Source: Takakia lepidozioides (Eukaryota; Plantae; Bryophyta). Taken from it: DNA of 64,000 bases. The notes below the pieces were generated by a model, which was given only the letters and a program-made list of their open reading frames with translations, made no database searches and was not told the DNA's origin. The DNA lies in assembly GCA_030704615.1 (NCBI GenBank), contig CM060731.1, positions 11,346,001-11,410,000 of the forward strand, given 5' to 3'. Each line of letters opens with the position of its first letter. Positions within the stretch are counted from its first letter, which is position 1. Both the position numbers and the translations under genes were made by a program. Below, piece after piece: positions 36,283 through 53,700 of this stretch.

Positions 36283-38269
36283 AGCTGCTATTAACCCCTA
36301 TCAACACAAATATTAAGCCAAACATATCAATATACATTGAAAGAATCACAACAAATTCTACTTTAGAAGCCCCCAACATGTACTCTCCAATTCCTAGTTT
36401 TGCAGCATTTACTCATCAAGGTTCTAAAGATTGCTGTGGTTTTGCAAATATGTTACCAATCCCGTTTTCAAAGAATGGCAAACAAGCTGACGGAATTGAA
36501 GAGCCAATTAGAAACAGTTCACCTAAACTCGTAGTCAAATGTGCAAGATGTGGGTGGAGATCTCCTTGGAGACACCGCCATCAAGTATGAGCCAAAATCA
36601 TAGTTGCTTATGATTGTGTGAATTAAATCTATTATGTTTGTTTTTCACTTCATTAACAAAATAAGTCGGGTGGCTTGTAGGTGGTCATTTCATTATTTTA
36701 TTCACAAAAAGTGTGAAGGAATTGAGGCATATAATGACCTTCAGAGCTCAAAGCACGCCCATGTGCATGGATGACTCTAGTGACAATGGCTTCAGTTGAG
36801 GGGTGTTGTGCTGCTCTCTTTGATATTTCTTTCGTATGTATTGTTTATGTTTCTTGCTCTCTTGTGGCTTCACTACTGTAGGGCATGATATTCATGTAAT
36901 TGTATGAGGGAATGGTTTATTTTTGCTATATGTCTTAGTGACAATCATCTTTTGTCACTGCACCGTAACTAACCTCCCATATTGACATTTGGCTGTGCCA
37001 CTCACAGATGATGTGCTTCATCGTGGTTAATACCAGCAACACCTTCACAATCTAGCTTTTAAGATCAAATGATAGTTGTCTATTGCAAGTTTGATAAGTC
37101 AAATGGGCTTTGGGCTGTTGTACTATAGTTGCAAGACATTAGACCAGCGCCAAACGGACGTAGATAAATCGTATGTATTTCTGGAGTAGTCGGGATGCCC
37201 GGACCAATTTTGTTACCAAAAAAGAAGACAACTGATGAAACCACAATCAATAATATTTGGTACAGAATCCTTGAATCAGTTCAAAATTTCTACTCATGAG
37301 GATGTTATCTAATTGCAGCCTTGGCCGTCCTTGTTCAGCTTTGATTGTCTTATCATTATGATTGCTTGTCAACAAAGGCCCGCATTGGAACCAATGCAGA
37401 TCAGAGTACAAGAATTAATTTGAGGCAAAGCTTTAGCTTTCCTAACTAACCAAGCCATTGACATCTGAGAATGTCTATTAAAGAATAAGTTGCCACATAT
37501 CACAGGCAATCAAATGGAAATTATTGAAACGATACCAAAGTTTGTTGTAAGTTCTTGGCCTCTTTTTGCTTTGGATAATTTCCTAAATCTGTGTAGATGT
37601 AGAAGTTAAGGCTTAACTCTGATGAATGTCTACCCAAAATCCATTTTTTTTCCCTCGGCCTCGTTAGCGAAAATGAGACTCCAGCTCAGAATATGGTGGA
37701 AACTCTTTCTTGACATGTGTTTGTCTTGCTTATATGTGCTACAAGCTTGGCCGCCCTACGTCATGGTGCTGGTCATATCCTCTTATTACACTCAAGCCAA
37801 GTCTATTGTTCCATGTCTGACTTCAACAAATAGGAGAAGCATTCCAATATGTATGTTATTCATGGTCTTTTCCTTGAGATGACTGGTTCCACAACATGAC
37901 AATCACTGTCGGTTTTGTGACATTTCTTAGACTGCAGAGTTAAAAGTACTTCCAGTCATCCAATCAGCTCTTCATTACTACAAATACTGAACCAGTTTCA
38001 AGAAAAAATTGATAACAACTGTTGACATGCATTTGTCTGATGACAACAATGGGGGTACCCAACCACAACTCTCTAAACAAAGTGATGAACAATCAAAATG
38101 TGGAATATCTCACTGTCTTTCAAAACAAAATATCCATGCCCACCATGTTGCTTTCTAGTCATCACTACCCATTCCCAAGCACACTTGACTTCACAAACTC
38201 ATCACAAGGTTGTAGGACTATCCCCTTGCTGCAAAGAGAAAAAAGAGTAAAAGAAGAGGGATATGGAAT

Positions 38270-38560
38270 ACAAGCATTTTCTACCAAAGCTGCATGAGGT
38301 TGGGCCAATTTGTGTGCCACTCAATGCTTACCCCATAATTGCATAAATGGACTTATTCTTACACTCATGCCTCTGTGACTTCCAAGAGTTCTATGCAGAG
38401 CTCAAATATCTGCTTCATTATATTGTAGCTTCACCATTATTTTTTCTAACCATTGGTTAGTATCTCTTATGCGATCACCATCATCACTAGAATAACTGCA
38501 AGGACTAAAAAGCTTAGTTGCGTTGAAAACCGAAAGATATGTGAAAACGCCATACAAGTG
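38270..38560 (-). mobile_element. Degraded hAT-like transposase fragment
   Basis: Minus-strand remnants FNATKLFSP...QWLEKI and WHTNWPNLMQLW*, resembling the region before the hAT C-terminal dimerisation domain. Many stops. Confidence 0.3.
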
Positions 38561-39869
38561 AAGGGGTGACAGGCTACTACGGGTCGAAATTTGTGGTTGC
38601 TGGAGAAATAACCATGTCCGAGGTGCTATGAAGCTTACTTAGCAAGCCTATGAGGGTTTGCCCATAGAATAATAGTCCTTTCCCAACTTTTTGGCCTCGT
38701 CCAACCTGCCAACACCCAAGTGGGGAGGCCACATGACAAACTTAAGCACATGACAATGACAAAACTAATCAAGTAGACGACAATGTCTACATACCGAAGT
38801 GGGGCATTGCGACAGCCATGGTTTTTGCTGCTTCCAGCATTTCTTGTCCTGGAGTAGGATTGGATCTGGGGGAGCCAACACCATTTCATTAAGTGGAGGT
38901 GTAAAATGATTGACATGAAATTTTTATTGTTTGTAATTTGCATAAAATCCGAATGTTCATGATTCAAAACGAAAATTTGTGTTACACTCAATTCGGTGCT
39001 TCAAATTGTTATGCTGAGTTATGTACATTTCATATTCTTCTACTTATGTACATTTGATTACTGGTTGAAAGTGTCCAACACAATTAGGTCCGTCTTAAAA
39101 AACAATTTGCGATGGCTCTTCTTGAAAGTGATTACACGTTCAATCATAACTTTGCAATTTTTTTAGACCACGTGTGAATTAGAGGTTTCAAAATAATCAA
39201 AAGTCCAAAACACTATATTGAAACAGCCCATATACCACTTTGTTCAGTACTGATAGACATTTGGTTTAAGTATTCTTCTTCTAAATGTACTCCGTGTAAT
39301 GAATGCAAGAATTCAGTAGCATGTTTTCTAATTGAGTAATCAGCTTTTTAGGTACACAATTGTGTCGAAAAAGTAATCGTCACTAGCAAATTTGTAATGA
39401 ACTGTACGCGGATCAAATTCAAAGAACTTAAAACAAAGTCCATGGCGTTAACTACGGAAACCATATCGTGTATGCATTATGTTCTAATAATTCTATGAAC
39501 ATGTGAAACAAACAAAAAAATTGTTAGACATAGAACAATGCAATCGTTCATAAGCTGATCATAAAGCTCTTGCTTTGTCACTTCGGTAAATACCAAGTGA
39601 CGCTTGCTAATAGCTGATTTGATTGCGCATTGTTATTTGTTCATAACTTATTGTTGATTGCGCATTGTTTATAGCTGATTGCTCTAGACTACTCACGATC
39701 AATACATGAACGTATAATCGTACAAGTTGTTGATCACCAAAACATCGAAATATTGCAAACATAAATCAATCCGGATATGAGCAATGGTATCTGAATATCA
39801 ATAACCTAGAAATATGAACTCGGATATGGTATTAAAAAATAATATAATAAAAATGGTACTAGTATTCAA

Positions 39870-42800
39870 ATTTATTTATTTTTATTTTTATTTTTATTTT
39901 TAGAATAGGGAACTGAGGTCCTGGAGAATTTATTCCAAAAAAGCGGAATACAAAGAAAGTGAGGAAAAAATAACCTCACTAGGGAAACCATGAGGAAGAT
40001 AAAGGAGCTTTGCCCCGTAACCAAAACTAGGAAGCCTGCAGAGGCTAAGGATAAGAGCGTTGCAGGTGGGGGATGTCTAGGGCCTGGAAGAGGCGAAGGA
40101 AAGATGCGCCTTGGGCTTGCCCTTCCGAAGGGTGGTGCGCCACTTGACGTCAGAGTCTTCTGGTTCAGCTGACTGCTGGGCGGTCTCGTCTCCATTTTGT
40201 GTGATGATTGTTGGATGGGGAATTGGGGATGATAGTAAGGGCACGGCGTATGGTATGATGGGTATTAAGGTGAGAGGTCCAGGCGCGTTTTTGTGAGCGG
40301 GTAAGGTATCCTCCATTTTGTTTGGATCGGGTAGTCTGGGGGAGGTCCTGACAGGTATGAGGGAGTGGGCTGGGCACATGGGGAACCAGGTCCGTGGGAT
40401 ATGTGGGCATAAAGGTGCATATCGAGTAAACATAGTGACGATGTGAGTAGACATAGTGATAATGCGCCGGGGGTGTGATGATGCTAAGATCTGGTTGTGC
40501 GTGGATTTTGGAGTATTGGTGGGCAGATGTGGGGTAACATATACTTGTGGCAGTTGGAGAAATAGGGGGAGGTGAAGGGATGGAACGGCAGGTATAGTGT
40601 CTAGACCAGAGCTGTGGATGTAGGACCATTCAAAGTATGGGGAAACCAATCAAGTATAGTGGTGTGGTGGGCACCAGCCTGACCAATAGTCTGATTGGCA
40701 TAACAAGCAAGCTGTAGAGTAGTGGGGGCCTCACAAAGTACTGAGTATGGCATGTACCCCACTTCTTCTAACTAGGTATTGGTGATGTAGATGGATGGTA
40801 GAGACACCATGAAGATGCGGGCAGACAAGTATACAGACGCCAATTGTAGCTTATCAGACTCGTAGCAAAGCTGGTGGGCAGCAGGGGTGATTTCCATTGT
40901 ATGTTGAGAGACACAGGAAAGGTAATGTGGCAGTTGCTTGTGATGACAAGTGCCCAGTATGGTGAGGGCAGCCTGTTGGTGCAGGGGCAGGTCGTAGGAG
41001 ACGTCTTGGCGGAGGGGGACCAGCCCCATGTCTGACTGTGAGCTTGGAGGGCAGTGGCCACGCTTGTACGGATGGGTGCTGTCAGGTCTTGGGAGGGAGA
41101 ACCACTATTAAAGGCCACCCTGGTTACTGTGTACTGTACGAGTAAAAAAGAATGTGTGAGTCTGGGTGAGTATGGATTGGATATACAAAAAGTAGTGGGG
41201 CAGTAGAGAAGATGGATTACCGGGTAGCAGGGGTGGTAGTGGACAAGCAGAGCTCTGGCAAGCTCTTACTCTAGTGGGTAGTAGCACGGGTGGGGGGGAG
41301 ATGAGATTGGGTGAGGAGTAATAGATCGGGGGGCAACAAACAGTGGCAAGCAGCAGTGCTGAGGGGGAGATACATGAGAAGTATAAGGATCAAGAGGGGT
41401 TGTGAGGACATAACTGGGGGAGGCATTCAGCAGAGGGTGAGATTTGGGTGTGGTAATCTTCAGCACAAGGGGTGTGGCACAGTCAGGCTGGGAATAAATC
41501 TGGTAGAGGGCCCTGAGGATAATGAACCGAGTGTTGTACAACAAAGAAGTATTGGGGGTTGAAATTGGGGTAGTACGCATATTGATATAGAGTATTGGTG
41601 TAGTGAACATGGGTGGACCAAGGGGGGTAGAGTACCTGTGTGGAGCTGGTGAAGCATTGGGTACCTGCGGAGTATAGAAGAGCCAGAGAAGGATGTTGGG
41701 TACAGAACGTGCTGAATTGAGTGTTGCGATAAGAAGGTAGGAGGGGGGGGGGGGAGGTAGAGGTCTATTGTGCACTTGGAGTTCACAAAGAGCAGCAGGG
41801 GTTGAGTGTGGGCTTGATAGCAGTGCGTTTGAGCTGGCAGAGATGTGGCTGTTGTGGCGCTGAAACCAAGCAGGAGTTGGGAGGCCGGAGAAGACATCTG
41901 AGTGGTGTGGGGCCAAATGCGTTGGGTACCTGCTGAATCTGCTGAACCCACCCCAGCAGGCAACATAGTTAGTGGTGTGGAAGAGATACGAATTGTGTAG
42001 TATTGGGGAAAACACCTTTGTATCAATTAAAAGAAATAAATTGAATTGAGTATGGAGTGCCAGCATGGGCGTAATGAGGGGGGTGGGGAGGCAGCTCCAC
42101 CTGTTGTTACTCTGATTCCAATACGTATTGATCCTGTCTAGAGTACGTTGGGTGGTTTGTGGGGGTAGAAACATATTATCATGGGATGAGGGATCTGTAG
42201 CGAGAGGATGGGTATACTTGGAGTTAGATAACCGATGACATAGATGGGGATCAGTCCTGGGGGCAGGTGACCATGCAGAACTGGGCCGACTATGGATTAT
42301 TGGTTTAGGGAGGAGTTGAACACAAACATCCATAACCGTGGTGCCTGCCGGTAGAGATAGGGGCGTTAAGGGTAATGCGGCTGTGGCAATAGTGGAGCTA
42401 AGCCTGCTAGAAGCAGAGATCGTGAGAGAGTACCAGAAGGTTAAGGCACTTATCTTGAGGGAGTTCGAGCCATTTCGTCCAGGGCCAGCCGCACTGGCTG
42501 TAGCATAACCATGCTCTGGCAGGACCCCATAAAGGAAGGAGACAGTGTGGGGCCAGTGCAAAATAAAAATTATAACACGGGTGGTGGGAAGATTCAAGGT
42601 AGAGATACTTACAATAGTGGGGGCAGAGTGATGAGTAGTGAGCAGCAAGGGAGAAAAGCGGATCGTGTCCACCTGGGGTTGCTTACAAGGGAGCCCATTT
42701 GAGGTGACGAGTTTGCGCCCTGACAAGGAAGTCCGCTTGTGCACTACAAACCTTGGAAAGGGCCCTGTTGCCTTGAGAGAGATATGGGTACTGGTAGAAA

Positions 42801-43690
42801 GGGGGGTACCTGTTCCATGTGGTACATGTGGGGTTGTACATAGGTCGAGGAGGTTAGGAACGCTCCGTGTAGAGCCATAATGTGGAAGATGGGTGTTGAT
42901 GTAACTGAATGAGAGCGTGGCGCCTCGAGGGAAAGAGATGCACCATGTACCACTGTCCCAGACCATCTCGGAGGAGTCCACACTTGGGTGAACCCGCATC
43001 TTTGAACGCTTGCTTCTGTTAGAGGGAGGGTGATATCTAGCCAGTGGAGTCGTAGAAAGAAATAACTGGGCCAATGTCGATAGGTTCGGACAGCAGAGTG
43101 ATGGAAACCATGCGTGAGAGAGCACCAGCATCATACGTGAATCGCTCACGCCACCTTGGACTTGTGCAACGTTGCAGCTAATCCAGTGAGGTGATGAGGT
43201 ACAGGTGCAGAGAAACCTGTAGCTTGTGCACAGAATCTTAGAGCTATGGCACACGTAGAGCGAGGCTGGCCGTCGTGCAAACAGCGTGTAGTGGTGGGGC
43301 GGTAGCTGGTCAGGCCCGCCTGCGTACTCCGTAAAATGGGCGCTGATGGGAAAAAGCTCAATCGTGGTCTCCGGGGCCCAACGCAGACGATAATCCTGCG
43401 AGAGGTAGTTTAAACTCTACGTACTAGAGTGGTGAGAAGAGTGGGGGTGTGATAAGACCCAGATGCAGTGGGACAAGGTGAGAAACGGGGGGAAGAGACG
43501 AGTTGGGGAGCTATGGCGGCTGACCTCGCCAACATTGTTAGTCGTAGCTAGGATAGCAGACCCGCTAGTGAGAGCGTGTGAGATAGTGGAAATAAGAAGA
43601 AGGTTTAGCAGGAGCGCTAAGTTGGCGGATAGCAGAGAGGTTAGCCGGGAGGCGTGGAGGAGGGCGGCGCTCCGCCCTCCCACCATAGCT
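39870..43690 (-). mobile_element. C-rich retroposed segment with a long unknown ORF and an A-rich (TAAAAA)n 3' tail
   Basis: 662-aa ORF 41266-43254(-), with further P/H/T-rich coding-like frames down to ~40080. Minus-strand tail AATAAAAATAAAAATAAAAATAAATAAA at 39871-39903. Abrupt composition change at 39870. Confidence 0.55.
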
Positions 43691-43732
43691 CAGGCACGTT
43701 TCACCTGCATTATCAACCCCGCCTGTAAAAAA

Positions 43733-46175
43733 CTTGAAGCCTTACATCTTGCTTGTGAATCGGATCAACCTCTAGCCCTACTTATTTGGACTTCGAAAAA
43801 ACGTTCGACAATATGGATTGGGACTTCCTCTTGGGTGCTATGCACAAGCTAGGATTTTCAGGGAGCTTTCTTCAATGGGTCAAGATCCTGCTCTCTTCAG
43901 CTTCCAGCAAAGTCTTGGTGAATGGTGTCCTCTCCTCCGCCTTTCAATTACATCGTTCTGTTCGGCAAGTTTGCCCGTTGGCCCCCTTTCTTTTCTTGTT
44001 TGCGGCAGATTGTCTTGGACATCTTCTTGACTCAAGTTCGCACATACAGGGCCTTCAGATCCCCCGTTCGCTGCCTGCTCCTGCAACGATCAAAACTTTG
44101 CTATGATATTGTCATGTTGTTGAACAACGCCATGACATCGAATATTACGGCCGCGTTGCAGGCTCTTCATCTTTTCTGTATGACGTCAGGTCTTAGGGTT
44201 AATTGGCCTAAGTCAGTAGGGATCCTCTCAAAACAGCGTGTAGACTCGATAAACAACCATGCAGATGCTTGGGGCCATGATCTTGGCTTGCGTTGGCTTC
44301 ATAATGGGCAAGCCCACAAGCTGCTCGGGCACCTCATTGGTCACGATTTGACAGACTCTCAACGTTGTGAAGCAGTTATGAAGAACATCATGAAGCATTT
44401 TACCTACTGGAGTTCTCTTGGACTCTCAATTACAGGGCGAGCCTTAGTGGCTAACCAAGTGATTCTCGCATCCTCGTGGTTCTCCGCGGTAATCTGGTCT
44501 CCAGGCTCCGAGATTATCTACCAAATTAAAGTATTGGTTAGAAACTTCCTCTGGGGTGGAACAGCCCTCTCTCCGAATCGCAAAGCTCTGGTTAGCTTGG
44601 CTCAAATCACCCAGAAGAAAAAGCTGGGAGGACTTGGTATCATAGACCCTCTTGCTCAGATTACCTCCCTACTCGCAAAGTGGGTTCCCAGGATTTTCAC
44701 AAATCTTTCAGCTCCGTGGAGTCTGCTAGTCCGCCATCATGTCATGGATGCAGCTCCCACATCTGGAGTCTGGCCTAATTCCCTTCGTTGGATCGTGCAA
44801 GGCAAAAGTTCATTCAGAACTTATCCCTTGGGCTCCAAACTTTGGCAATCTATATGGGCTGCATGGATTCAATTGCCATCCACATTGGAAGAGGCCTTGC
44901 GTCAACCTTTTTTTGCGAACTTCAACTCCGATTCAGAGGTGCTTTTATTGGGAGCTAAAAAATGGAGTCATTGGGAGATGGCTGGAATTTCGCATCCATA
45001 TATGGGATCCTCCCAGCTTCCTCCCCAAAGACCTGGTCACCTCCCACCTCACTTCCAGAAGGGCAGGAGCTTGGGATTCACTGATTAAAGAGATACCCAG
45101 CTTTGGACTTCATTTCCCTCGGTTCAGGATGCACCAAGGCTGCTTCCAGCCTGGCTTGGGAAAGGTGCCCCCGGGTTTGCGCAGGTGGCCCTCTACGCCA
45201 TATCACGCCATGGCAACACTCTGGCGGGCTGGCAGTTTCAGGCTGATAGGGTTGGGGGCTTGTACCATCCATCGTTCAAGTATCTTCAAGAAGAAGGTCT
45301 CTTTGCGATTAGAGTGTTCTGCAGGATCTTGGGAGCTTGCAATCCTTCGCCGCCACCCAATATCAAACACTACTCTAGGTTCTTTCTGTTGGTTCCTTAA
45401 TGCACCGGTCACACACCTTCAGTTTGACCCTGCAGAGTGGAACTGGATGTCAACCCCTCACAAACCCTTCTTTAGCTATTCGGTCAAGCTTGGTTACAAT
45501 CTGCTGAGACCCCCGGCTCTCTTCTCTCACAAATGAAATAGTAAATGGGAGCATCTTCCACTGCCCTCACTGAAATGGAACTTGGTTTGGAAGGATGTTT
45601 GGAGGAAAAAAAGGGCTGCAAAAATAGGTGGATTTCTATGGAAGATTGTCAATCGTATCTTGTCAGTTTTCGCTCACATTTCGGATCCCCAGCTCCCCTA
45701 CTCCATCTGTAACTCGAATGGTCCAGAGACCATTGAGCATTTCCTGGTCCAATGCCCCCTGGCCTCACTAGTTTGGGCTGCTGTTAAGAGATTTTATGCT
45801 GATTGGTCACTAGACTTCTCTTCCCAGATTTCCGTTTTGCTCTTGAACATGCACAATGGTGCTTACTGGAGTACATGCCCTCTCTGGATAGCACTGCGAG
45901 CCCACACCTTGTGGAATATCTGGAAATGTAGGTGTTCCTGTGTTTATGAGGTTAAGGTACCAAGTGCTAAGATGGTATTGTATCGAATTCACAACGACCT
46001 TATGACTGAAGCGAGAAAATCGTGGAGCGTTTTGTGTGCAGCTGCTGCCAGAAGCTCTCAGAACAAGAGGTTGCAACTATTCGCTAACTTTGATAAGTCC
46101 TGGGGAAAAGGAGGCATTCTGTGCACAAGAGTTTCCGACTCATCGGTTGTCTGGAACAACCAACTCCCATCATGT
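43733..46175 (+). mobile_element. L1/Tx1-type LINE, 3' half of ORF2 (RT core, zf-RVT), frameshifted
   Basis: LEALHLA...DFEKTFDNMDW, SVRQVCPLAPFLF, SGLRVNWPKS, LSITGRALVANQV, GGLGIIDP, ETIEHFLVQC, LWNIWKCRC. Confidence 0.9.
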
Positions 46176-49100
46176 CCAATTACGGTGAACAACACCATAT
46201 TCTGAGTGACCCCCAGGAGGGCTTCCGAGCCACACGTAGCACACAACTCGTCAAATACAATACGTCCTCTCAGCCCTCGAAGATGCCAAGCTCACTAAAC
46301 AAGATATCTATCTCTTGTATATAGACTTTAAAAATGCCTTTGGATCCTTAGACCACGCTAGACTACTTGCCATCATGACGGACCTCCGTTATCCCATCGA
46401 TGCCATCCAACTCATTGGCAACATCTATACCAACAACACTACGGAATACTCCGGTTCATACTATGGTACCACCCTCCCCTATTTCTATCCTACGTTGTAC
46501 CATCCAGGGTGATACCCTCAGTCCATACCTCTTTATTATCTTTTTAGAACCTCTACTAAGATGGTTAGCACGCGGGAATCTCGGCTATCACTATAGAACC
46601 TCCCTCAATGAAATCTCCGCTGTCGCATACGCTGACGACCTCGCTATTCTAGCTCACAAACCCCAACACCTCAACCGGCAAGTCAGCAAGTTATCCCGCT
46701 TTAACTTATGGTCCGGCATGGAACTTAGCCTCCACAAGTGCGCTGTTACCGCAGCAACCCACCGTAGTAAATTAACAAAAACTGCGATGGCTTCTCATTG
46801 TAAACTTTACTAAACAACTCCTTCCCCTTTTTGGGACCCGATGAGCCTTACACATACTTAGGTATCCAGCTAGTTCCATCACTCACCTGGCATGTGCAAA
46901 AGACCACCACACTTGCTAAGCTCTCTAACAAAAGCCTGGCTCTTCTTAAATCCGCTGTCTCCATTAGACCCAAACTATCAATCATCAGCTCTGTGCTTAA
47001 GCCACAAGTCCAATACTCTTTTCACGCCGCTCCTTTCTCCCTACCAGATCTCAAAGTACTAGACAAACACATCACTCAACTAACCAAGCGAATATGTGGC
47101 TTACCTACCAGTACTCCTAGTGCCCTCACCCAACTCCCGACAGACTATTATGGCGTCGGCTCCAGCCCCCTGATTATTTTATATGCTCGAACCCTTGGTA
47201 CCCAGCTACAAGAAGCACTCAATGACCCTGGACGCCTATGACTTATTTACCACAGACTTCTTAAATTCCTAGCCCACAAATTCAATGGACTACAAGCCCT
47301 CCCATCTCTTCATTCCCAATCTTGCCTACACTCCCCCACGACACGTACACTACTCATCCTACGACAAATGCGTATCAGCATCCAAACCGACATACCCCGC
47401 TATCATAACACGAAACCACAGCTGGAACACACCTAAAATACCAGCCCCTCCCTCTCCCATTTTGAACGCCTTCATCCCCGCCAAAAGCGCTCCCTCCTCA
47501 CCTATTTCAAAGAACGACATATCACTCATCTCACCCAACTTACCACCGCCACAGGGACTCAACTTATAACCCCGGGAGCATTCACACTTAAACATTCTCG
47601 TGCCACAGCCAAAACATGCAAGTTCCTCCAATACCTACGTACTCTACTTTGCCACCCATCCGCATCATGTACCCTTGAATGCGATCTCCCATGCTCACTC
47701 TTTCCTCATACCCAACGCGACTTACTACCTGCCTACAGATCAGGCCCATCCCCCTCTATCCTCCACACGCTTAGGGCCTCCCAAACCGCAGGGACACTTG
47801 AAACTAGAGACACCCCATCCACATCCACCTCCCATATACCCTATCCCCACTCGGATAGGGACTCGTCACAGACCCCCCCCCCCCGCCTGCATCCACACGC
47901 CATTCCTTACGCAAACTACTTCCACCCCAGCTCCCACCTCACTTGATACTCCTGCAACTCATCATGACCACACAGATAACCCCGAAGCATATGTTATATC
48001 CTAGGTATTAAAACCCAAACTTCCACAGACTCATATGGGGCCACTTGTATTGATACCTATTACCTATGCCAATGGGCCGGCTACACAGCTGATGATAACT
48101 CATGGCAAATCGAGGATGACCTCTTTGGCTCACATGACGACTGCGACCCCGCCCACAATCTCACACTCCTCACCGCATTCCACAAACGTACCGACACTAA
48201 CTACCTCGCGCATACCCACCAACAAAATATCTCCCAAACCCAACCCAAAGATGCTCGACACGTACATCAACCACTTACTGCCCCCAACGTACACATACAC
48301 ATTACTGAATGCAATCCAGATAAGGATATCCTGCACACCTCCCCCACAATCTGTCAAGGCCCTCGCATGTCAACTATATACACCTTCTACGGCCGTTTTC
48401 TTGGCCTCATTCCCAATGACAGACTAGCTTGGCTATGGGCTAAATACTCTACTTCCTCCCCCTGTGATGCTCAAATCCACCCACCCCGACAAGACTTCGC
48501 TACCGAACTCAGTTGGTTTGCTACCCGCTACCTCCAAGACACTCCTCCCAAAAAACCCCGTTCCCTGACAAAACTAACACAAGCATTTGCTCATACTACC
48601 ATCCCCCTGGATATCCTCTCTCTGCTCATTACCACTTTTAGACTCACTCATTCATATTATTCCAGTCTACTTACGTGCCCGATGGAAATCACAACTTTTG
48701 CCAGCCCCCACCCCTGGGACTCCATCTTCGGAGCCACCGGACATGCCACCCAACACGCATGGGCAGGGAGGGGATTTGCCAACCCCCCTTCAGGCGCCCT
48801 CACACATGTGGCCCTCCAATGGGTCCGTATGGCCACACAATCCTCCTCATCAAGCATCACGATCCTTTTACTCACTCACCAAAAGCTACCCAACAGTCCC
48901 CACCCCCTCCTACGATTCCCACCCGGTGTAACACTCCTTGCCACTATCGAACCTAACCAACTCCGGTACATCCACACCCCGCCCCTCCCCAAATACCTTC
49001 GTTACAAAGAACCCACCCTTACCCTTATTCTTCATGTCCAAAATACCACACATTTCACCATACCTCCCACCTTCCCTGCCCTACTGGATCAACTCCTTAA

Positions 49101-50760
49101 GCGCACTCACAAGCTAAAAACCACCATCTACCCCCAGCATCTCACACACCCAGTCCTCACAATTCCACCTGGCCCACTCCCTAGGATTAACTTAAACAAG
49201 GCATGGAATAAGACGTTACCGCGCCCGTCCCCTGCCCCTCCTACCCTCCCCCCGCTCCTCCCATCCTACTGCCAATCTATACCTCCCAAATATCCGCCAT
49301 CCCACTCCCACTACACCGACGGCTCCCTCAATGGCTCCCACGCAGGATATGGAGTATACCATGCCGCTACCGATCAGGGCTCTGCTCACAGACTTCCTGG
49401 TTCTGCCACTATACTTCGTGCAGAACTAATGGCAATATTTGAAGCGCTCACCCAACTATCCTCATTCCCTCCTCCACATTATATCTTCACAGACAGCCTC
49501 ACCTCGCTCTTTCTCATCCGTAACCACCTCTCTTGCCCATCTTCTCACCATTATCACTCTGACCGTAATCTCATCACAACCATCGCCAACCTAGCTATCT
49601 CCATCAACCAACCCATTCACTTTATCAAAGTGCATGCACACGCAGGTATCCGGGGGAATGAGGCTGCCGACCTTCTTGCCCAGGAAGGTGCCGACGAACC
49701 CCCTGTTGACCCTACCAATGATCCCATCCACATAGCACATACCCACCCATTCTGGCTAATACACCCCATACCTGACCCCCTTGAGCCCCGACCCATACGC
49801 AACCTTTTGAAATCCCTTACTCGAGAAGCCAATAAGCAAACCTCGGTATCTGCTAGCCACACTAAACTATACACACAAAAATAGACACAATCCGGTGTAC
49901 TCCATAACAAACTCTCGAACTACTTCTGGCACTCCAAAGCAGCTACTGACGCCCAAATCAAACAAACGCTTAAATTCCGATACGCACAATATATGGGACA
50001 TCAACGTAAACACATATTCTGGCCACGCCTCTTCCCATCCCCACACTGCCCCCTCTGTTCTCATACCCACCAGGAACGCGACACCTGGCCACACCTTCTT
50101 AGCCAATGTACACTTCCGGTCATCCATGGGTTTCGTATAACCCGCCATAATCAAGCAGTTTGGCACATCCATAAACTCCTCCTCCATCGCGCCGAGACAA
50201 GATGGTTCTCGCTAATCAATGCTGGTACTTACCAAGGACGACCCCCAGACCACACCGTCCCCCACTGGCTTCTCCCTTGTACTTGCTCCCACCCCCCGTG
50301 CACCTACCCCGCCAGACTATGCCCATACATCTTGCTTGTACATGGCCTACCCCTAAACTCCTCCCCACCCACCGCTCCAACCCCAAACCTCACCATCTAC
50401 TTTATTGAATTTACATACTGCCATGATCGATACCCCGCTGATTCAACGCTAGACAAACGGCTTAAATACGCGCCACTTATCCTTGCGCATCGACATAAGG
50501 GCTGGGTCACTCGCCCTTTGACGGTTATCACGGCTGGCACTCGAGGAGGCATTCATAATGCCAGTATCGATGCACTACACACTAACTTCAAACTCCCGAT
50601 CCTCTCCATTCATAAATGTTTCAAAGCAATACACCTCACAACCCTCCGCTCCCTCACAAGCATTATTACTAACAAACGTAAACTTGAATCTAACCCTTCT
50701 CTGGCTCCCGGGATACCTCGGGTACCCTAGGTACCCCACGGTACCGTTGCTCCTCTAGAC
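46176..50760 (+). mobile_element. 5'-truncated Dualen/RandI-like non-LTR retrotransposon: RT, chromodomain, N6A-MTase-like, RNase H, CCHC, restriction-like endonuclease
   Basis: RT: QEGFR, YIDFKNAFGSLDH, TIQGDTLSPYLF, AYADDL. RNase H: YTDGS, RAELMAI, IFTDSL, KVHAHAGIRGNEAADLLA. CCHC knuckle CPLC..HLLSQC, then RHNQAV, RLCPYILLV, IEFTYC, KRLKY. Mostly frame +1 with a few stops and frameshifts. Confidence 0.85.
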
Positions 50761-50794
50761 TCCTAGTGTCCTATGGACACCTTTTTTGAGAGGG

Positions 50795-53700
50795 CCCAAC
50801 CGGTCTGATCAGGTCGCACTAGCTTATGAAGGTAGGGCTGTAATCTCCGCGTGAGAGCCTTAGCAATAATTTTATAAGTTGAATTGAGCAAGGTGATGGG
50901 TCCATAGTTGGAAATAATATCTCTATCGCCCTTCTTGAAAATCAAGGTAATGACTCCTTGAGAAAGGTGGGAAGACATAATGCCCTTATGAATGATGTCG
51001 TTTGCCATGAGGAGAAAATCATCTCCCAAATTGCTCCAAAGGGCTTTGAAAAACTCCACAGGAAGTCCATCAAGGCCCGGCGATTTTAGAGAGGGCAGGG
51101 CTTCCATGGCATCACACAATTCATCAACCAAGAATGGAGCAGATAGAGATAAGGATTCTTCTTGGGATAAAATTTTGGGAACACAGTCCAGGACTCTATT
51201 TCTCGAGTCCACAATGTCCATAGAAATTGTGGGGCGAGCAAAAAGATTGGAGAAATAGGATGCAGCCACCGAAGCCATTGCCTTGGGGCTAGAGTGGGAT
51301 GTGTTCATACGATCTCTGAGAGAGCATATGGAAACAACCGACTGACGCTGTTTAGCCTTCTGAAAAAAATACGCCGACATTTTTTCACCCTTCAATGACC
51401 AGGACACCCCCGCTTTCCTTTTAATGTTGAGCTTTTTTAAGGCGCGGAGCTCAGCTAGTTCACGCCTGGCCTGGACTAGTGACTGGAAAGTGACAGGGCC
51501 CACCAGGGCAGAAGCATGCTACAGTGGCTCACTTTTGTCCAGTCTACTCTAATCTTACTCTTTTTTTCATCTTCAAAACAAAACAGCTTTGTTTGGAAAC
51601 CAATTTTTGGGTGATCTCAAATTGAGTTGACAACAAAAATAAATTGCAACACCTAATTTAAAGTTCTTATGAAAAAAGATATAAATGAAAGTAGACTAGT
51701 TTGGACTGGACAAAAATTTCGCAAAGTGAGCCACTGTAGCATGCTTCTGCCCACCAGGTTAGACTCAACCAACCATTGACAGTGGGCAATTGTTTTCAGA
51801 AGGACCTTCTCCTTTCTAGCCCTATCTTCCGCCATCTGTCTAGACAAGTATTGAGCTCTGGATCTGGTAGCAGCGAGCTTAGAAAGAAATTTGACTGAAG
51901 GAGAGGCGAAAGAATTGCCCGCCTCTTGCCATACCCTTCCTAGGTCCTACACCATAGGAATGGATTTAAGAAGAGAAGGGTTTAGCTCGAAGAAACCTCT
52001 ACCCCTGCGGTGGAGCCCAGGCACTTTTAACTGAACTGAGACCAGCGCATGATCGAAGTCAGGTAAGATAGGGGGAAGGGGGACTGGAGAGATCCAAGAG
52101 GAGGCTGTGGTAGAAGAATAAAACCTGTCCAGCCTGGCCATGCATAAATCAGGAGGGCGTCTATTATTAGACCAAGTGAATCTAAGAGAAGAACGCACAA
52201 AACGGAAGGAATCGGAGAGGCCAATTGAAAAGCAAAGACGATCCCAGGCTACTTGTTCCTCCGTAGATAAGGACTGAGAGGATGGCCCCAGCCTGTCAGA
52301 GAGACATTCTACCATATTGAAATCACCTCCTAGGATCCAGTTATCAACCTCCGGGTGCTTTAGAATTGATTCATGCATTGAGGCCCAGAAATCTATTCGC
52401 TCAGAAGTGGAGTTAGGAGCATATATGTTTATGAAAACTGAGGCCCCAAAAAAAGAGGAGCTAACAGTGAAAGCACATTGAGCCCTACCTGGCATCCAAA
52501 TGTCTTCTTTTGAAAAGCAATTACCTAACGAAGGCGAGACAAGGATGGCAGTACCGCCTCTAGAGTCTACTAAAGTCGGGTTCCACCATGCCAAGGTGGA
52601 GGGCCAAAATGACTGACCTAAGGAAAAAAAAATTCCTTGCGGAAAGCTTATGCTCTTGCAGGAACAAAATGCTATTAAGAGGTAAAAGAGAGGAGGCCCA
52701 ATTCCGGATTCTACTTCGTTTGGGCACAGAACCCTCGGAGCCGATTCCTCTAATGTTCCAAGAGTATAGATTCCAACTCATGTAGACTGAACTGCGAAGC
52801 CCGTGACTGATTCATGATTTGATGGTTGTAGGGGAGTAACCTCAAACGTCAGTCGAGGGTCGGTAGGAAGAAGAGAAGGCACCCATTTGTAACCCGATGG
52901 AGCCGAGACTTTCAAGGATCCCACAAACCAGATTGTAACACTGTTAGGGCACAAAGAAACGGAGATGGAGCAAGGCCGGACAATTCTCTTAAGGACTGAG
53001 CTAGATAGCAGAGAATGCATGGAGACGTTCAAAAATTTTGATATAAAAAACAATCCTTCATGCGAGGTCGCACTATCCGAGCATCTCAAGGCTGGCAGGG
53101 AAGCTGACCGAGTAACCGTATCAGCAACCAGAACGCAAGCAGAGGAGGGGGAATCTTTACAATAAATGAAAAGGGGGATGAGCAGAGGGGAGGGAATGAG
53201 CTCACCACCGAGGGGGAAGGGATGGCCATATCTAGGGGCGCCAAACAGAATGAAGTATTGTCCGAATCGGGGATCGGGACTCTGGTCAATTCGTTGGATC
53301 CTGAATTGTTATCCAAGTTGCGCGAATATTTCTGTGAGGAGCGCAGGGCCTCTACCAAGAGCTTCCCAGCTTCGTAAGTAGTAGATAAGTAGGGGCGGCT
53401 GGCCGCGTTTCCCAATTCGACTGGGACCGAACTACCAGAAATCCACTTTAGCGTTGAGTCGCCAGCCAATAGGGAAGAAACGTCAGATAGCTTGATGACT
53501 GGCAAAACTTGAACGAAGAATAGATTGCTGTTAGAGACAGATTGATGCACTCTGGAGCCAAAAAACACAACAGTTTCCGAAGTCAACTGAAAAGTGGGAA
53601 GAGAAGACGAGAAAATCTCCCTTATTTTGGCAAGAATGAGCTCCAACTCTTTTCCTTGAGAAAGGGTGAAAACGTCCTTCTTGGTGATCCAGGTAGAGGC

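Follow-up and report, generated by a model that had tools for sequence, protein, structure and literature searches.

A truncated Dualen/RandI-type retrotransposon copy in Takakia lepidozioides carries a chromodomain and a PCIF1-like methyltransferase fold between reverse transcriptase and RNase H

The stretch analysed here comprises 64,000 nucleotides of the genome of Takakia lepidozioides (contig CM060731.1, positions 11,346,001 to 11,410,000; hereafter the window). Positions 46176 to ~50790 of the window hold 4.6 kb of a Dualen/RandI-type retrotransposon of the class without long terminal repeats, a long interspersed nuclear element (LINE) whose family is abundant in this plant genome; the copy has lost its 5' part and been inactivated by mutation. 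The remains of its polyprotein are ordered as reverse transcriptase (RT), linker, chromodomain, PCIF1/CAPAM-like methyltransferase fold, RNase H, CCHC knuckle and R2-type restriction-like endonuclease. An earlier note on this DNA, made from the sequence alone, had described the element as a LINE with a chromatin reader and writer cassette. We consider it likely that the copy is a dead member of a Dualen/RandI-type lineage with an old, conserved module made of a chromodomain and a PCIF1-like domain, in which the chromodomain would act as a chromatin tether and the PCIF1-like domain would be non-catalytic. The features of the copy are as follows.

46176–50790 (+): whole element copy, delimited by composition, by the frame path taken from relatives and by contig depth; the 3' end is approximate (50787–50797).
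46176–47238 (+): reverse transcriptase, from just before motif A through YADD (46628–46639) and the thumb (Pfam RVT_1, tblastn).
47239–47979 (+): linker with in-frame stops at 47239 and 47434; no recognised domain.
47980–48228 (+): chromodomain, three strands and a helix (Pfam Chromo, AlphaFold, VIA-align).
48337–49134 (+): PCIF1/CAPAM-like class I methyltransferase fold (profile, Foldseek, VIA-align), spanning the segment 48595–48880 singled out in the earlier note.
48781–48792 (+): motif IV position, NPPS as against NPPF in PCIF1; the aromatic residue is absent.
49309–49692 (+): RNase H, residues 444–571 of the long open frame (Pfam RNase_H, E = 1e-15).
49882–49884 (+): TAG stop in frame, separating RNase H from the endonuclease part; a different letter stands here in other copies.
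50047–50109 (+): CCHC zinc knuckle (C55, C58, H70 and C75 of the C-terminal piece), unchanged across 19 relatives.
50143–50727 (+): R2-type restriction-like PD-(D/E)xK endonuclease (profile of the 19 aligned C-termini against PDB).

The sense strand of the element is 37% C and 14% G, with a GC skew of about -0.5. Frame 1 is free of stops for 634 codons (47980–49881), a run with a chance probability of ~5e-10 given the base composition of the element, and it resumes past the TAG at 49882, up to position 50727. The earlier note had seen this frame pass through the chromodomain, the PCIF1-like segment and RNase H, with a beginning at 47998 that lies slightly inside the actual one, and it was right that the CCHC knuckle and the endonuclease follow in the same frame; its count of a single stop was too low, with further stops at 47239 and 47434 in the true frame in addition to frameshifts. 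Alignment of relatives by tblastn traced the reading path through frame 2 from 46163, frame 1 from 46243, frame 2 from 46469 and frame 1 from 46804, so that the reading frame of the RT region changes in the order 2/1/2/1, the shifts falling near 46240 and 46475, where other copies have 2 letters and 1 letter fewer, respectively, than the window. An extra frame change must lie somewhere in 47757–47943, because the last part of the linker and the opening residues of the chromodomain are encoded in frame 2. The frame pieces were searched separately.

Short contigs from DNA runs of the source organism align by the hundreds to 46176–~50790 at 90–99% identity. Their summed depth within 46182–50643 is several-fold above that of the flanks, which shows that the family is abundant in the source genome, and at most of the breaks in this copy other genomic copies differ in sequence. 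None of the RNA runs contains this part, and two runs presumed to be RNA yielded no contigs, which is not a sign of silence. Upstream of position 46175, contigs of other copies diverge from the window yet still encode RT; the copy is therefore 5'-truncated exactly at 46176, the start that the earlier note had assigned. Its assigned end at 50760 falls ~30 bases short, the 3' end lying at ~50787–50797 and an L1-like family starting at 50798. No A-rich tail was seen at this 3' end.

A search with the 634-residue frame against 1.84 billion representatives returned 1337 matches, 164 of them below 1e-10, and many matches span residues 8–420 and not RNase H alone. The RT match (Pfam RVT_1, 46240–46810) is split across two frames with E-values of 8e-5 and 3e-14, and by tblastn the domain is 34–46% identical to the RTs of the relatives P0024, P0111, P0128 and L001, a JGI metagenome contig, values of 28–34% also being obtained against those of P0111 and P0024; in conserved blocks, the L001 RT reaches 65–70% identity to that of the window. 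The RNase H domain has all four catalytic residues, D, E, D and D, in YTDGS, AEL, TDS and NEAAD. The C-terminal endonuclease begins with RHN (50143–50151), followed by the PD position (50323–50328), the conserved Glu in IEFTYC (50404–50421) and the terminal TAG at 50728. In an alignment of 19 C-termini, the CCHC residues and R-H are invariant, P-D is near-invariant and the Glu in I-E-x-x-Y-C is conserved. The PD position of the window copy reads P-Y, and the catalytic Asp has thus been lost in this copy. A profile of these C-termini matched R2 proteins in the PDB, with E-values of 7e-15 (9nl3), 1.3e-14 (9dou), 4e-13 (9nl2) and 9e-4 (R2Bm, 8gh6). The RT, the RNase H and the C-terminal CCHC knuckle and endonuclease named in the earlier note were thus all recovered.

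The chromodomain lies at the start of the long frame. The isolated 87-residue piece matches Pfam Chromo with an E-value of 3e-5 and 24.3 bits, just short of the cut-off of 25.1, and the whole long frame gives a weak Chromo match at its start; the relative P0001 clears the threshold (E = 4e-9, 36.6 bits). The AlphaFold model of residues 1–430 of the long frame has a mean predicted local distance difference test score (pLDDT) of 80 and exhibits two confident domains, residues 1–83 and 120–385, separated by a disordered stretch, with a pLDDT of ~90 over the chromodomain. Superimposition of the N-terminal model domain with VIA-align onto the chromodomains of Rhino, MPP8, CBX1/3/7, CDY1 and CDYL2 yielded Z-scores of 7.5–9.1 and root-mean-square deviations (rmsd) of 1.1–1.8, with Rhino at Z = 9.1 (rmsd = 1.8 over 64 residues) and MPP8 at Z = 8.5 (32% identity). 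A profile built from the window segment and 39 relatives matches chromodomains in the PDB weakly. The chromodomain call of the earlier note, placed at 47998–48125, is thus borne out by both profile and predicted fold.

Sequence comparison locates the W and Y of the aromatic cage within CQWAGY (48067–48084). The first cage aromatic, the Y of E-A-Y-V-I, sits in frame 2 and is severed from the remainder by a 7-letter loss at 47997/47998, where other copies have 7 additional letters; adding those letters joins the frame-2 E-A-Y-V-I to I-L-G-I-K and gives a canonical start, E-x-Y-x-I-E-x-I-L, in one frame. Residues 1–6 of the AlphaFold model are not meaningful, because they are out of frame with respect to the other copies. 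The Tyr of the frame-1 C-Y-I-L-G was rejected as the first cage residue, the residues preceding I-L-G likewise being out of frame. The fold and two of the three cage positions appear as in readers of H3K9me3, the third appears to be present in the family, and a role of the domain as a methyl-histone reader is plausible.

The nearest known setting for such a domain is the chromoviruses (Ty3/Gypsy), which share with this element a canonical HP1/MPP8-like chromodomain within a retrotransposon and, by analogy, its likely use as a tether to methylated histone tails. Their chromodomain is linked to the integrase, whereas that of the LINE stands between the RT and the methyltransferase-like domain of an element that would insert by target-primed reverse transcription. 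The chromodomain of one gene model deserves separate mention. The public model P0139 (3046 residues) is a chimera in which pieces of this LINE family are joined to two Gypsy chromovirus polyproteins, and its Chromo match (8e-18) was rejected as evidence on the family for that reason. The chromoviral chromodomain in P0139 resembles that of the window (local phmmer E = 7e-5), and this likeness hints at a chromovirus-like origin of the plant LINE chromodomain. In the long, probably algal relatives P0111 (residues 1320–1560) and P0128 (residues 2560–2740), ~60–100 inserted residues with a PHD-like cysteine cluster interrupt the chromo-like region; one of the aligned segments matches PHD in Pfam with an E-value of 0.005.

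The second domain of the AlphaFold model has the fold of PCIF1/CAPAM, the cap-specific mRNA N6,2'-O-dimethyladenosine (m6Am) methyltransferase (PDB 6IRV–6IS0; PF12237). The profile of the window segment and 39 relatives matched PCIF1/CAPAM chains in the PDB with E-values of 1.5e-8 (6irx) and 1.9e-7 (6irv), and Foldseek placed six PCIF1 entries on top, with E-values from 5.9e-10 (6irv) to 1e-7. VIA-align against 6irw gave a Z-score of 19.1 and an rmsd of 4.0 over 229 residues at ~20% sequence identity, with model residues 120–374 corresponding to human PCIF1 417–668, and the remaining methyltransferases reached a Z-score of at most 8.6. No counterpart of the part of PCIF1 before residue 417, in which its helical cap-binding domain would fall, was aligned by VIA-align, and upstream of the fold lie the disordered stretch and the chromodomain. 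A search of the ESM Atlas likewise returned PCIF1 clusters at the top and Dam clusters as weaker fold neighbours; no Dam-like feature separate from the PCIF1-like one was found. The placing of an N6-adenine methyltransferase-like fold between RT and RNase H in the earlier note holds. Motifs of the PCIF1 family are recognisable in the window as SSLLTC (48661–48678; FASPLNC in PCIF1) and FGATG (48727–48741; FGSRG in PCIF1), together with the motif IV position. At the homologous position in relatives, Pfam PCIF1_WW (PF12237) recurs in P0024 (E = 1.6e-13), P0051 (4.7e-15) and P0091 (1.9e-14), and also in P0037, P0041, P0023 and P0128; automatic Pfam annotation in public metagenome records already marks PCIF1_WW on such open reading frames (ORFs). 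The name of this Pfam family is misleading, as it models the CAPAM-like methyltransferase and not a WW domain (PMC7641849).

The catalytic signature is another matter. N6-adenine methyltransferases including PCIF1 use [DN]-P-P-[YFW], and cap specificity is conferred by a helical domain of its own (bioRxiv 10.64898/2026.10.22.757692). None of the 79 family domains that cover the motif position has the canonical tetrad. NPPF of PCIF1 is replaced by NPPS in the window, by H-P-P or H-P-H followed by a polar residue in most of its close kin, and elsewhere in the family by NPEY (12 of the 79 domains, which form one clade) or HPPY (3 domains). The LINE domain further differs from PCIF1 in its embedding in a retrotransposon polyprotein and in having no WW domain, for which no Pfam match was found in the element. 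With the tetrad absent from all 79 domains, a match limited to PCIF1 417–668 and no WW domain, members of this clade are unlikely to methylate RNA, cDNA or target DNA, and the "writer" of the earlier note is not supported. A precedent exists in the methyltransferase domain of DIRS1, which Iyer and colleagues placed in the PCIF1 clade and judged inactive, with catalytic and substrate-binding residues substituted, suggesting RNA binding or mimicry of PCIF1 instead (PMC4738411). The earlier note had named Dam-like methyltransferases as typical of DIRS elements; given this placement, the DIRS1 domain is a parallel to the present one and not a different kind of methyltransferase. Taken together, the PCIF1-like domain is most likely non-catalytic in the clade of the window and maintained for binding or structure.

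Several observations weigh against the explanation that we favour, a conserved module of a chromatin-tethering chromodomain and a non-catalytic PCIF1-like domain. The majority of relatives score under the Pfam Chromo threshold, and the first strand of the chromodomain is broken in this copy. A preference for heterochromatin would follow from analogy and from an algal observation, and not from the source genome. S-P-L-x-C and F-G, shared with PCIF1 around the presumed cofactor site, belong to the most strongly conserved motifs of the family, and the NPEY clade retains N, P and the aromatic residue, so that residual or altered activity is possible there. The motif counts also mix living and dead sequences, many of the relatives being decayed. 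The conserved motifs and the twelve domains with N-P-x-Y also favour the alternative that the PCIF1-like domain is an active adenine-N6 methyltransferase acting on the capped RNA, the cDNA or the target DNA of the element, at least in the NPEY lineages and perhaps in those with NPPS or HPPY. The wide margin by which PCIF1 is the nearest fold speaks for it, as does the long-term retention of a ~260-residue domain, which implies selection for some function. Against it stand the absence of the canonical tetrad, with mostly His for Asn/Asp and no aromatic in the clade of the window, the lack of an alignment to PCIF1 before residue 417 and of a WW domain, and the verdict of inactivity on the related DIRS1 domain. 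We regard an active enzyme as unlikely, a non-catalytic domain remaining the better account.

The association of the two domains is not peculiar to this copy. The same order of segments recurs in dozens of relatives at 20–43% identity, including long single ORFs from other sources. Chromo-like and PCIF1-like regions are contiguous in the fragments P0001, P0004, P0005, P0007, P0014 and P0016. RT, PCIF1_WW, RNase H and the endonuclease tail, the last as judged by the alignment of C-termini, occur together in the single ORFs P0024, P0128 and P0037; P0091 has RT, PCIF1_WW and RNase H in a single ORF, the tail alignment covering only other ORFs. The most complete case, P0128 (3608 residues, one ORF on an NCBI contig), comprises an apurinic/apyrimidinic endonuclease domain (APE, residues 1201–1413), RT, PCIF1_WW, RNase H and the endonuclease tail, and P0111 comprises APE (residues 2–221), RT, RNase H and the endonuclease tail, its chromo-like and PCIF1-like regions being alignable too. 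Within the source organism, contig depth over 47928–49285 is as high as that over RT and RNase H. On this comparative evidence, the pair of chromodomain and PCIF1-like domain is an old, conserved module of the lineage and not a capture by one copy. A chance chimera or a host-gene fragment confined to one copy or a small subfamily, an idea to which the nest of rearranged repeats in the window might lend colour and for which nothing was found in direct support, is very improbable in view of this recurrence and depth. The earlier note had named the lack of the segments from other family copies as the outcome that would speak against its proposal; they are present, in order, in many relatives.

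Dualen of Chlamydomonas was reportedly described by Kojima and Fujiwara in 2005, and the present family resembles Dualen/RandI elements in combining, within a single large ORF, RT and RNase H with a CCHC knuckle and restriction-like endonuclease at the C-terminus, and in the N-terminal APE of P0111, P0128 and L001. The window copy is truncated at 46176, short of any position that an APE could occupy; in L001, an APE gene lies upstream of an RT closely related to that of the window. The combination of APE and restriction-like endonuclease is given as unique to the Dualen clade (PMC9977147), and we file the element there for this reason, in line with the layout proposed in the earlier note; this putative membership is based on architecture. 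The window copy differs from the known elements in its origin from a plant genome, in its very C-rich sense strand and in its missing 5' part. Labels in the legend of a schematic of Chlamydomonas transposable elements include APE, RT, RNH, RLE, a cysteine protease (JCP) and PHD (PMC9977147 Fig. 4B), and neither a chromodomain nor a methyltransferase-like domain appears in that legend. A literature search found no description of a module of chromodomain and PCIF1-like domain for these elements, in agreement with the earlier note, which had not recognised the architecture as described. No paper in the search joined Dualen with PCIF1, and Dualen and chromodomain occurred together in one general review; the founding descriptions of Dualen/RandI lay outside the search, and an earlier mention is possible.

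Other element classes share parts of this architecture. R2 elements share the C-terminal CCHC, RHN and PD...E(x)K endonuclease and differ in having no APE, RNase H, chromodomain or methyltransferase-like domain. DIRS1 shares a PCIF1-clade methyltransferase-like domain in a retroelement polyprotein beside RT and RNase H, but its order is RT, RNase H and methyltransferase with a tyrosine recombinase, as opposed to RT, chromodomain, methyltransferase and RNase H in the window, and the LINE family uses APE and restriction-like endonucleases. That the copy is a fragment of a DIRS element or of a chromovirus, as the PCIF1-clade domain of the former and the chromodomain of the latter, similar to that in P0139, might suggest, is hardly credible given the R2-type C-terminus, the N-terminal APE of relatives, the position of the methyltransferase fold before RNase H, the lack of Pfam matches to integrase, protease or tyrosine recombinase in the element, and the lack of terminal repeats, no repeats of at least 40 bases being found within 38000–53000.

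One relative is arranged differently. In L001 (3740–10706), the PCIF1-like domain, RNase H and endonuclease lie on the + strand and face APE and RT on the - strand, tail to tail, and the junction lacks ~140 residues around the chromodomain. L002–L005 show this tail-to-tail layout too, the contigs coming from several samples.

By analogy with chromoviral chromodomains, the chromodomain of the LINE may tether the ribonucleoprotein (RNP) or integration complex of the element to methyl-lysine chromatin, and new copies would then land in repeat-rich heterochromatin. The PCIF1-like domain would be, in this clade, a non-catalytic descendant of a cap adenine methyltransferase that may still bind S-adenosylmethionine (SAM) or nucleic acid, for example the RNA of the element itself, or may be structural in the RNP. 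Dualen LINEs are the main secondary component of the centromeric repeat clusters of Chlamydomonas (PMC9940879), an enrichment that fits a chromatin-guided insertion of the kind supposed here by analogy. The window copy itself is nested among other repeats, at most a weak sign of chromatin targeting.

The surroundings of the element consist of further repeats. Two pieces of an L1-like plant LINE flank it in opposite orientations, at 43690–46175 (+), encoding an L1-like RT from motif A to zf-RVT, and at 50798–52785 (-), encoding an L1-like APE and the N-terminus of an RT, and both pieces break at a nearly identical RT position. This arrangement suggests that the flanking pieces are one L1 that was split by the insertion and later partly inverted, with two breakpoint scenarios that fit. 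Twin priming was considered for the inverted pieces and set aside: the order of the pieces conflicts with the topology of twin priming, and a later inversion is more likely. The piece at 50798–52785 was also considered as the inverted 5' part of the element and rejected, as its composition is ordinary, its RT is 27–29% identical to the RTs of the family over ~100 residues, and the L1-like zf-RVT piece at 43690–46175 complements it.

Further upstream, a block at ~40050–43689 (-) likewise has a C-rich sense strand (35% C, 17% G) and contains a 716-codon open frame (41269–43416). This block has no Pfam match, no homologue in a search of 5.8 billion clusters and no atlas neighbour. Its similarity to the 5' part of L001 is weak and not collinear, and its identification as the missing 5' half of the element is not supported. 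The block may belong to a different element, or form an N-terminal portion of this one that escapes recognition. An A-rich run resembling (TAAAAA)n at 39866–39902 (-), ~150 bases past where this C-rich block stops, may represent the 3' tail of the minus-strand L1 or of the block itself.

Through accessory domains, retrotransposons settle where they insert and how their RNA is protected or marked. With a chromodomain, a LINE would bring the histone-reading strategy by which chromoviruses reach safe heterochromatin into target-primed reverse transcription, and this would supply a mechanism for the build-up of Dualen elements at the centromeres of Chlamydomonas. The presence of a conserved PCIF1-derived domain in a second, unrelated class of retroelements besides DIRS suggests repeated recruitment or transfer between classes. 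Under both of these, the fold would be useful to retrotransposition even without canonical catalysis, for example in binding RNA 5' ends or SAM. A bolder proposal, which we consider doubtful, is that a functional epigenetic module is present in Dualen-type LINEs all the way from green algae to land plants, in which the chromodomain steers the element to H3K9me/H3K27me chromatin and, in the lineages with NPEY, the PCIF1-derived domain still methylates adenine in the cap-adjacent base of its own RNA, in cDNA or in target DNA; if true, this would be the first adenine methyltransferase encoded by a LINE, with a possible common origin with the DIRS domain. Because the family is abundant and other copies differ at the breaks of the window copy, both domains are open to direct biochemistry and to the mapping of insertion sites.

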